Source: Botryllus schlosseri (taxonomy: Eukaryota). Taken from it: DNA of 64,000 nt. The notes beneath the pieces were generated by a model. The model searched no databases, was not told the origin of the DNA, and worked only from the letters and a program-made list of their open reading frames with translations. Position numbers and translations under genes: made by a program. The DNA lies in NCBI GenBank assembly GCA_051294905.1, contig CM119379.1:20026001-20090000 (forward strand), written 5' to 3'. Positions 1 through 7,000 of the stretch are shown piece by piece (position 1 is the first letter of the stretch; each line of letters starts with the position of its first letter).

Positions 1-184
1 TTTGATGATATTTTTGTTGGCGTTGCCCCTGTTTCAGATGTGTTTCGTTACAGACTATGGGAACACAAAATACACAGTTCAAAATAACTGATGAAGATTG
101 ACAATGTGCAATATAAGAAGGGTGAATACGTTAGGTGGATAATTATTGTCATGGTATTGTAAATGAAAAATCAAGGGCATCAGC

Positions 185-617
185 CAGGGTTGTAATGACT
201 CAAGTCACGACTTTCTAATGACTCAAGTCATCTTCTCGAAATATGGAAATGACTCTATTCACACAGATTGACTCGACTTGGACTCGAGTCATTGCGCATG
301 ACTCGGACCAAGTCATATGACTAGAGTCTCAGACGGCCAAGACCGACTATGCATGGTTATTACGAAGAATAGTAAAGTAACCACACCGTTGGTATTTCGC
401 CTATTGGTACTGGTACTTGAAAATGTGACCAGAAACCGTTGAAAGTGAGGAAATTAGTATATTTTAAATGAAAATCATTCGAGACTCAAGTCATAATACC
501 ATGACTCGGACTCGACGCTCTGCAGTGAACTAAGATTGACTCGACTTGACTCGAGTCAAAACTTTAAAAGTAAGATTGACTTGTGACTCGGAGCCTTGCG
601 ACTTGGTTACAACCCTG
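185..617. mobile_element. hAT-like MITE (433 bp), 30 bp downstream of the lectin gene stop codon
   Basis: Perfect 11-bp TIRs CAGGGTTGTAA (185-195) / TTACAACCCTG (607-617). Perfect 8-bp TSD GCATCAGC (177-184, 618-625). Many internal GACTCGAGTC-like palindromic subterminal repeats. Confidence 0.9.
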
Positions 618-4000: not shown

Positions 4001-7000
4001 TCCTACTACATAAATCTAGTTTACTGGACCACGGCCTGACATATCGATCTCGATTTGACGCATGCCACATTTTCTTTGTCACCTGTCCTTTTATATTATC
4101 GTCTTTTACTTTTCATTCAGTGTGCATGCCTCCTTTTTTACATCGCCTAGGCCCGGGTGGGTGTCGGATTTCGAAGACTACTCCAAGTCGTTTCGACACC
4201 TTCCTATCGTTCATTGTATCGCAGTCTTGTGGTGTGTGGAAATGATTAAATTTTTAGCAATAACTTGAATTAATTAGTTACTATCATGATCTTAGTTCCA
4301 TTACGTGAGTATTCGGAATGCTACCCTGGCTAAATATACAAATGAGGGGATCGTGTACCGTACATGGACGCAATTGCGGGCAAGCACATCCTTACAGATC
4401 TTAGTGTTTCAAACTTGTGAAGCTGCTAATCGGAGAGTAGTGTTAACAAATCAAAATATATGGCTATTCAAAGTTGTATAAACTCGACTGTCGATTGGAT
4501 TTATCCAACACCAGTTTCTCACCTGTTTCACATATGAACGGGAATCTTTTGATACAGTGATAGTCATTCCACATTGGCGGGTCCACCAGCAGCTTAATCC
4601 CACCGCATTGCTCATCACACCATGCATTATTCGGCTCGGCATACCTGTGACCTTGCAGATGCCAGTTCTCAAACGGATACGTCCCTACATAAATATGTAA
4701 ATAAACGCGTACAACAGTTGAACAAAGCTTAAAAACAATCACTAATCCTACAGTACGGAACACATACCTTTTTCGCACATGAGTGGTAAACGAGTCTGGC
4801 AATTGATGTCAATCCATTTCATTTCATGGTTAATGGCGGCACAGTGTTGCCGATTTGCAAGTAAGTCACCATCTGGGTCTGACCTGACTCTCCAGTTTGT
4901 GTAAGCTATTGAATAGTTAGATAGTGAACAAACATCCGTGACTAGTGTTGGATTTCCTTGGTAAACACTTTGATATCGCAAAAGAAAAATCGCTACATTA
5001 AATGTCTTCAAAACGTAATAAGTACTCACGAGCAAAATTTCTAGGATTTGGAACAACTAGTGCCATCTTCCTGTACCAAGCATAATGAATAAACACACGG
5101 CGATTCCTAGAATCGCGCCAATCAGAGAGATCTGTCGGGTCTTGTACCAAGTAAAAATAGTATTTGTCCACATCCAAACCCGATCCATCATCAATGAAAG
5201 CGAAATGAAGCTCCTGAAAGATTTCGTCGCAATGTAACATTTGAAAATGAAAATCTTCAAGAGCACGTTACTTTGATTTTTTGCCCGATCGCATTGTTGA
5301 TTTCTTCTGAGTCAATGTTAGCAAGAGTCCCGTTTATATTCTCACAGGTGGCGGACGAGTCGTCGAAATTACCGAAAGTGTCGTTCCACAGAAACCACCA
5401 AACGCCGTCCTTTGTAATATTAGCCGCGTAGCGTGACAGCGTACCGTTCAGACTCATATCTTGACATAAAATCACAGTATCTCATCGAAATAATCCTTTT
5501 GTGGACGCAAAGTACAAACTTGCCTCCAAGATTTAGGGAAAAGTTGACGGTGGAATTATCGCGGAACTTCCAAACACCTTCTTCATTCAAATCCGACATG
5601 CCAATCCATATTGCAACTGCAAAAGACATCAGAATACCAGATAAGCAACAGAACTGGCTATAAATCATATTCCCACTTTTTGCAAATACTATGAGATGGA
5701 AATATATATATTTAATCATATGGAAATGCCAGGTGTAGAGGCTGTTAATTACTCCCATGAATGCTTTTGTATATCATTTTGCAGTGTAACAATCAAACTG
5801 GCCAAGGTGGATGCCAGATCAAGAGACCATAATTCGATTCGGCACCCTCCTATCTTTTCATTAGATTTCATTGTCTCTTGTATATCACATTGTACATGCT
5901 GTGAGTGTCTTGGACTGATGAAAATATAATCTGACGATTCAATCATAAATAATCGTCAAATTATATATTCATATGATCATGACACACACACTGTACAATG
6001 CGATCAGACACAATATGATGTAAATTATTGATTAATATTACGATGAATAAAAACATGGGAAAGAGTTGAAACGAATTGGAGTTCTCAAGAGGCATGCATA
6101 TTGAACGAAAAGTAGCTTGCAGGATAAAATAACAAAACAATCATTTACAATGTAAAAATGAGTGACAACATTTTGACCATTCAGCGAGCAGATCAGAGAA
6201 CTTCTAGCAATCAACTGAACAGCATCCACTTACTGGTATCATTCTTCAAGTCCAGCTTCGGAAAGTTGGACGTCAGAAAATCCATTTTCTTTTGATCCTT
6301 GGGCATTGCAAGCATCCCCCAGGCATCTAAAGCACAAGACATCAACGTACTACACGGTATACTTAGAGAACTCTCTACATACGTTCACAATAGTCGGCTG
6401 CACCTTGCCAAGGAATGGACTCGTTGAAGTAAAGTATCGCTTTGTCGTTGTCTTTCGTTTCAAAGTTTGCGTAGATGCCTTAATGAAACAGATTACAGGA
6501 GGGTTTGTAAGATTTTAACAAGGTTTCGAACTAACCTGTCGGAACACTGCAGTTCTGCCCTTTGTAATATTGGGAGCATATGCACCGACCGTTTACGCAT
6601 TGCTGGTGATCGCTACATGCTGATTCGCAAGGTTCATCTGTGTGCAGACAACAGATAATACATATTAACATACATTGTCCCCACTTTGAGCATAAATTAA
6701 TTGATTTTATGACAAAAGGTCCGGCATACGATATTGGATATGCTTATAGAAACAAAAACATATCAACCGAGCAAGAATTGCATAGCAGGTTTTGGAATTA
6801 ATACAAGTGGTTTTCAATGAGTCATAAATCTAGTAACTAAATTACAAACTCACTTTCTCTGACCACATACTGAGCTGGATACTGACAAGTCACTAAAATA
6901 TAAAATAGTTGTAACAATAGCAATACAAGAGCACAAGAATAAAATCAAACCATCCATGCACATAACAGGGTATGTTTCATTGCAGTCCCGAAGACTCCAA

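Follow-up and report, generated by a model that had tools for sequence, protein, structure and literature searches.

An apparent C-type lectin domain within a C-type lectin domain in a multi-lectin gene of Botryllus schlosseri

We analyzed a stretch of 64,000 nucleotides from the genome of Botryllus schlosseri (assembly GCA_051294905.1, contig CM119379.1, positions 20,026,001 to 20,090,000 of the forward strand; G000:C9:20026001-20090000 in the 495.5-Mb genome), which is referred to as the window. Its minus strand carries a module of seven exons encoding two C-type lectin domains (CTLDs). Three exons for the N-terminal half of an outer CTLD are followed by three exons for an inner CTLD and by one exon for the C-terminal half of the outer CTLD (Table 1). 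The conserved module can be written as EGF-(N-half/inner CTLD/C-half). It sits, after the EGF exon, in a very large multi-lectin gene whose product is probably extracellular.

An earlier note on this DNA, made from the sequence alone, had given coordinates and motifs for both outer halves and for the inner CTLD, and translation of the minus strand confirmed them to the base. The N-half exons (6478-5524) supply the N-terminal 60% of the outer CTLD and the exon at 4684-4523 the remaining C-terminal 40%. The point of insertion lies 19 residues before the EPN motif of the host domain, at the start of its long-loop region. Both junctions between host and insert (5524/5459 and 4768/4684) were seen to be in phase 1, as had been claimed, and the codon split at the upstream junction (G/AT) encodes Asp at the start of inner exon eA. 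The inner cassette measures 510 nt (170 codons) and skipping it keeps the frame: the module comprises 317 amino acids (aa) with the cassette and 147 aa, an ordinary CTLD, without it. The donor after 5524 is GC (AG/GCAAGT), which makes the intron at 5460-5523, exactly at the host-to-insert junction, a GC-AG intron. The acceptor of inner exon eC probably lies at 4905, judging from the frame, the pyrimidine tract and gapless homology to relatives. Hidden exons completing each half separately, the observation that the earlier note had set against its own proposal, were excluded because the introns around the inner CTLD are only 64 nt (upstream) and 83 nt (downstream) long and none would fit. When the seven exons were compared with the window by tblastn, no further copy of them turned up in it.

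Table 1. Exons of the module and the preceding EGF-like exon in the window (X1, sequencing run described in the text)
Feature	Position	Strand	Sequence or motifs	Remarks
EGF-like exon	6536..6637	-	EPCESACSDHQQCVNGRCICSQYYKGQNCSVPT	directly upstream of the split CTLD; from translation
Outer CTLD N-half, e1	6383..6478	-	IYANFETK...ADYCE	beta1 and alpha1; Cys C1 in ADYCE; phase 1 at both ends
Outer CTLD N-half, e2	6234..6326	-	AWGMLAMPK...; AWGMLAMPKDQKKMDFLTSNFPKLDLKNDT	alpha1-alpha2 region; X1 joint 6234/5616
Outer CTLD N-half, e3	5524..5616	-	AIWIGMSDLNEEGVWKFRDNSTVNFSLNLG; WIGMSD...WKFRDNSTVNFSLNLG	ends in phase 1; X1 contig covers 5550-5616
Inner CTLD, eA	5272..5459	-	SSATCEN	beta1 and alpha1; Cys C1 in SSATCEN; starts in phase 1; Pfam profile 4-33
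Inner CTLD, eB	5030..5213	-	YYFYLVQD...DWRDS	divergent WIGL equivalent; X1 joint 5212/5271; gapless against Styela and Logan modules
Inner CTLD, eC	4768..4905	-	YTNW..DPD..C..WID..C..LMCEK	ends in phase 1; Pfam profile 67-107; X1 record 4
Outer CTLD C-half	4523..4684	-	TYPFENWHLQGHRYAEPNNAWCDEQCGGIKLLVDPPMWNDYHCIKRFPFICET; TYPFENW...EPNN...WND...FICET	long-loop region, beta3-beta5; EPN, Glu(+6), WND, Cys C2/C3/C4

Comparison with domain profiles revealed that the two outer halves complement each other. On the Pfam Lectin_C profile (PF00059, 107 positions), exon e3 of the window covers positions 42-64 and the C-half exon positions 69-107, and the inner pieces cover 4-33 and 67-107. In a relative from Styela, described below, the N-half covers 2-64, the inner domain 4-107 (E 5e-9) and the C-half 66-106. 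On a local hidden Markov model (HMM) of the CTLD, the outer halves of the window occupy positions 1-77 and 79-128. The outer split domain matches the whole Lectin_C profile in two complementary pieces, and the proposal that the lone exon is exactly the missing half was borne out by both kinds of coverage. When the cassette is spliced out, the resulting 147-aa form gives a single match over positions 1-128 of the local HMM (151 bits, with an HMM that was seeded from this very sequence). Subject to that seeding, the idea that skipping the inner CTLD would restore an ordinary CTLD holds from end to end. Cysteine C1 (in ADYCE) and the WIGM motif lie in the N-half, and C2 (E.CG), C3 (WND..C) and C4 (FICE) lie in the C-half. 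The outer domain thus has the four canonical CTLD cysteines (predicted pairs C1-C4 and C2-C3) as well as a WIGL-type motif. An additional cysteine in the outer C-half (AWC) is confined to one subfamily.

Singly, the window halves match Pfam weakly (E 0.017 and 1.9e-4). This is what one might see if the outer N-half, the C-half or both were relics, that is, decaying linkers that do not assemble, with only the inner CTLD at work. Against such decay, the N-half keeps Cys C1 and WIGM in all copies that we describe below, and the C-half is the best conserved part of the module.

The C-half also holds the sugar-binding motifs. A six-frame motif scan of the window found EPN...WND only in the C-half exon at 4684-4523, in agreement with the earlier statement that the split domain alone in the window has this pair. 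In mannose-type carbohydrate-recognition domains (CRDs), EPN, a Glu six residues further on and WND make up the full ligand set of Ca2+ site 2. All five ligand residues of this site are present in the window exon. EPN, the Glu(+6), WND and three cysteines are invariant in 12 of 12 aligned outer C-halves, which derive from at least three sources. That EPN and WND mark a mannose/GlcNAc-type Ca2+ site, as the earlier note had it, is standard knowledge and fits this invariance. The outer lobe is thus a probable Ca2+-dependent binder of the mannose/fucose type. The inner domain is a CTLD by profile, and its site reads DPD in the window and (E/D/Q)P(N/D/E) elsewhere, with W-I/V/F/E/T-D in place of WND. 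The inner domain appears to lack the canonical sugar site, as the Asn of WND is absent, and is probably not a canonical sugar binder. In one paralogue (L007), the inner CTLD carries non-Cys residues at the C2 and C3 positions.

The module is not confined to a single gene. The C-half exon has four relatives within ~180 kb on the same chromosome, which makes five loci in all (paralogues L006/L010 and L009/L012 on the minus strand, L007 and L008 on the plus strand; G000:C9 20.03-20.21 Mb). According to tblastn, N-half exons e1-e3, inner exons eA-eC and the C-half exon have an unchanged order and open frames in all paralogues, and Cys C1 and the WIGM motif of the N-half are present in every copy. 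The insert junctions could be read in four copies upstream and in five copies downstream; each of them is in phase 1, and the upstream junction codon is G/AT (Asp) in all four copies read. The nested design is older than the duplications behind the five local paralogues.

Relatives in other species were found by an exhaustive protein search with the 53-aa C-half exon. In Styela clava, the whole module is contiguous in XP_039270628.1 (4,991 aa) and in its isoform X2 XP_077971250.1 (7,864 aa), and again in a second gene, LOC120346535. An EGF domain precedes the module in Styela (P0001/P0021) as it does in paralogue L006. The Styela orthologue (4,991-7,864 aa) additionally contains discoidin, sushi, ricin and PF24562 modules. 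In Phallusia mammillata (CAB3262894.1), the C-terminus of the inner domain is followed by the outer C-half. A Logan contig (SRR32906204) of 2,937 nt is intron-free and encodes N-half, inner domain and C-half in an uninterrupted open reading frame (ORF) of 908 aa. It had no DNA match in the Botryllus genome and is therefore a transcript-like sequence of another species; a search with its module returned only itself. Further matches to the C-half included short unnamed contigs. The window module aligns end to end with the long relatives at 52%, 44% and 38% identity. Compared with Styela, identity amounts to 45% in the N-half, 47% in the inner domain and 80% in the C-half.

By general taxonomy, Styela and Phallusia belong to different ascidian groups, and the gene family with the nested module appears to span distantly related groups. 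Sequence comparison indicates that the nested arrangement is ancient. The order of the seven parts is far beyond chance because four paralogues and three other species show it too. The same recurrence bears on the possibility that a mis-assembly or mis-called exons had made two tandem CTLDs look nested, a possibility raised solely by the rarity of like-in-like nesting and favoured by no finding. Since the order is found at independent loci of the genome and in three other species, spliced contigs confirm several exon joints and missing halves could not be hidden in flanking introns of this length, we regard an artefact as effectively refuted. One difference was noted within the inner CTLD of Styela P0001 (residues ~1195-1245, also in P0019), where ~45 extra residues stand between Cys C2 and WID. 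Neither the window nor the second Styela gene nor the Logan contig has them, and the gene model may here include an additional exon or a retained intron.

We then asked structure predictors about the outer halves, using the Styela relatives for all folds. In ESMFold2, the Styela N-half and C-half were supplied as two separate chains without alignments. The pair scored 0.77, compared with 0.55 for the best control, at a mark that is reached by 51 of 78 solved complexes and by 2 of 108 mismatched pairs. Three runs had at least 89% of contacts in common, with a partner predicted local distance difference test (pLDDT) value of at least 62. The top contacts were Cys31-Cys51 (C1-C4), beta1 (15-18) with beta5 (49-52) and the WLG strand with the core of the C-half. 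For AlphaFold2 we used a MAFFT alignment in which 62 of 62 canonical CTLDs were laid across the split and none on the contiguous inner domain. The model reached a pLDDT of 80.7 and a predicted template modelling score of 0.67; the two lobes were predicted with confidence, the linkers only weakly. Another alignment, to which single-exon fragments had been added, was dropped; in it the inner exons fell on the outer C-half and N-half e1 was scattered. Structural comparison by VIA-align matched the model to the CRD of collectin-11 (4yli_D) with Z 20.1, a root-mean-square deviation (rmsd) of 1.2 A over 122 residues and 30% identity, and the matched model range (5..324) spans the insert. The top Foldseek matches of the two-CTLD model were fragments of the mannose-receptor family. 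A crossed pairing of outer N-half with inner C-half was ruled out: the inner halves are contiguous without a linker, and both predictions pair outer with outer.

The structure test suggested in the earlier note accordingly came out, as far as prediction on Styela relatives goes, with both programs assembling the outer halves. In these predictions they form one CTLD globule with beta1 and beta5 paired. For the relic reading this is a further difficulty, as the predicted contacts between the halves include the canonical disulfide and strand pairing. All parts remain open in five paralogues and in other ascidians, the C-half retains 80% identity to Styela, and the Ca2+ site and cysteines are invariant in 12 sequences. 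Decay of either half is in our view very unlikely.

To follow splicing in B. schlosseri we relied on X1, a contig-level run with a depth of ~2-7x and an RNA label that was a guess. We take X1 to derive from spliced RNA because the introns left out of its contigs have CT..AC ends (GT..AG on the minus strand). Its joints include 6854/6637, which leads into the EGF-like exon, 6234/5616 and 5271/5212, plus several further upstream and downstream. Record 5 spans 5271-5457 and continues at 5212. Record 4 (214 nt, depth 2.31) comprises 4767-4894 plus 86 more letters, which fit 4599-4684 only; with this placement the bin depths of 0.81, 1.34 and 0.36 were reproduced exactly, and eC is therefore spliced to the EPN exon. 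The bin at 5455-5651 is fully explained by one contig ending at 5550 and another starting at 5457. Contig depth was 6.9 for the N-half, 5.9 for inner exons eA-eB and 6.4-6.5 for the downstream exons. This similarity of inner and flanking depth argues for inclusion of the inner domain as the main form.

These data also bear on the second reading offered by the earlier note, in which inclusion of the inner CTLD as a cassette is regulated. In some tissues or at some stages 5524 would be joined to 4684, in others the inner domain would be included, and such a splice switch may coexist with nesting. The 510-nt cassette with phase 1 on both sides keeps the frame and, when skipped, leaves the 147-aa form with its 151-bit match to the self-seeded HMM; the phases are, moreover, conserved at every paralogue junction read. 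However, phase 1-1 symmetry is the default of shuffled extracellular modules and is thus unspecific. The donor that both forms would share is of the weak GC type in the window copy, and GC-AG introns are over-represented among alternatively spliced sites, but an ordinary GT donor is present in each of the three other copies checked. Among the X1 contigs of this single run at ~2-7x, no 5524/4684 skip joint was seen, and one contig joining eC to the C-half accounts for all bin depths at 4470-4863. The contig depth of the inner exons nearly equals that of the flanking exons, the inner domain is present in every gene model and transcript-like contig obtained from other species, and its conservation matches that of the outer N-half. 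A splice switch is accordingly improbable, albeit less so than a relic.

We consider it likely that the window encodes a nested module that is constitutive and whose outer lobe is sugar-competent, its inner lobe being non-canonical. Of the earlier note's two readings, the domain-in-domain insertion gained support from conservation, spliced contigs, contiguous gene models and contig and two folds; the splice switch found no positive evidence. Five neighbouring copies of the gene and other sea squirts retain the module, which therefore resembles a functioning protein design rather than an accident or something that serves mainly as a splicing switch.

Several points weigh against this conclusion. 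The folds are those of Styela relatives and not of the window's own protein. ESMFold2 may owe its result to a memory of the CTLD fold, with one control already at 0.55; a memory of this kind would concern the very point under test, namely whether the halves make up one CTLD between them. The AlphaFold2 model is not independent, as its alignment had already paired the halves, and with a five-row alignment pLDDT fell to 32.6. The GC donor at the host-to-insert junction occurs in the window copy only, GT being found in the other three copies checked. The 5524/5459 junction lies outside the coverage of all contigs and reads used from this species, so that splicing from 5524 to 5459 in this species is something we infer. 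Expression evidence comes from one low-depth run whose RNA nature was deduced from its spliced contigs. The bulk RNA runs X6, X8 and X10 gave zero depth on the gene, with reads on two intronic repeats only, and a search for transcript-derived ORFs with the open frame of exon 3 yielded no candidate.

With respect to the origin of the module, a three-exon phase 1-1 CTLD cassette (~170 residues, divergent) most likely entered a phase-1 intron of the host CTLD. In many animal genes for CRDs an intron is found at about this place, after the WIGL/W.W.DG part and before the long loop. Adjacent termini make a CTLD suitable as an insert, and the long loop is a tolerant site in the host. The host N-half (beta1, alpha1, alpha2, beta2) and C-half (long loop, beta3-beta5) would pack together by way of the usual C1-C4 disulfide and beta1-beta5 pairing. 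The result would be one canonical Ca2+-dependent sugar-binding domain of the mannose/fucose/GlcNAc type. As the N- and C-termini of a CTLD lie side by side, the inner CTLD may project from the long loop of the host as a second globular lobe. Judging from the residues at the site, the module would bind Ca2+ and sugar, and the two lobes may be functionally coupled; any function beyond the probable Ca2+-dependent mannose/fucose-type binding of the outer lobe is a matter of conjecture.

One such function would make the nested pair a natural domain-insertion switch, or its two lobes one composite binding surface. We rate this as unlikely. With both of its ends the inner CTLD would be anchored where the Ca2+-dependent long loop of its host begins, and if one lobe bound a ligand, changed its conformation or sensed pH or Ca2+, sugar binding by the other lobe might change. 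Control would gain a second layer if the cassette could optionally be skipped.

We compared the module with known systems. Like mannose/fucose-type CRDs (collectin-11/CL-K1, SP-D, DC-SIGNR, langerin, MBP), the outer domain keeps WIGx, four cysteines, EPN, the Glu(+6) and WND. Unlike in those CRDs, the host chain is interrupted by a whole CTLD of 170 residues, and no solved CTLD among the structural matches is discontinuous. As in the mannose-receptor family (MR, Endo180/uPARAP, DEC-205, PLA2R), several CTLDs, only some of them sugar-competent, are present in a large extracellular polypeptide. Members of that family have strictly tandem CTLDs in the order cysteine-rich domain, fibronectin type II domain, 8-10 CTLDs, transmembrane segment and short tail. 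In contrast, the module described here is nested and preceded by EGF, in a protein of ~5,000-7,900 aa with discoidin, sushi and ricin modules, and its gene is not a member of the mannose-receptor family.

Nested extracellular modules exist elsewhere. In integrin beta, the I-like domain is inserted in the hybrid domain and this in turn in the PSI domain, and in laminin and perlecan an L4 domain lies inside a laminin-type EGF domain. The principle is the same, namely an insert with adjacent termini in a loop of a discontinuous host, but host and insert there belong to different families, whereas here both are CTLDs. In the snake-venom C-type lectin-like dimers of the factor IX/X-binding protein type, the long loop is swapped between two chains. 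The long-loop region is likewise opened in our module, by an insertion within one chain. The lectin TC14 of Polyandrocarpa misakiensis (1BYF) is also a tunicate CTLD, to which the outer domain of the Styela model aligns with Z 16.8 and an rmsd of 1.9 A over 117 residues; TC14, however, is a small single-domain lectin with a continuous chain.

Domain insertion is reported for 20% of multidomain proteins in a 2026 survey in which lectins are unmentioned (PMC13114784). Full-text searches of the literature for CTLDs that are nested, split or inserted, and for three LOC names, returned nothing on a CTLD interrupted by another domain or on these genes. As far as could be found, CTLDs have been described solely as continuous domains, single or in tandem. 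If our interpretation is correct, the CTLD fold tolerates an insertion of 170 residues beside its sugar site with the site kept invariant, which would bear on lectin engineering and on domain-insertion biosensors. Shuffled phase 1-1 modules could then land in another module's own intron and persist across a gene family. Annotation pipelines would misread such proteins as partial CTLD, CTLD and partial CTLD. The module would also be a defined test object for coupling between two lectin lobes.

Two further observations were made. In the representative search, a protein of 1,789 aa labelled as from a Clostridia metagenome bin (P0007) was matched by the query in seven stretches; this is odd for a bacterium and may reflect eukaryotic contamination of the bin or lateral acquisition. 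Within introns of the window, a repeat at 4018-4250 and 5900-5939 is heavily represented in all RNA runs, with an X1 word depth in the thousands. The reads on it are only partly alignable and continue as poly(A) after 5939. It is probably a dispersed, transcribed short element outside the lectin mRNA.

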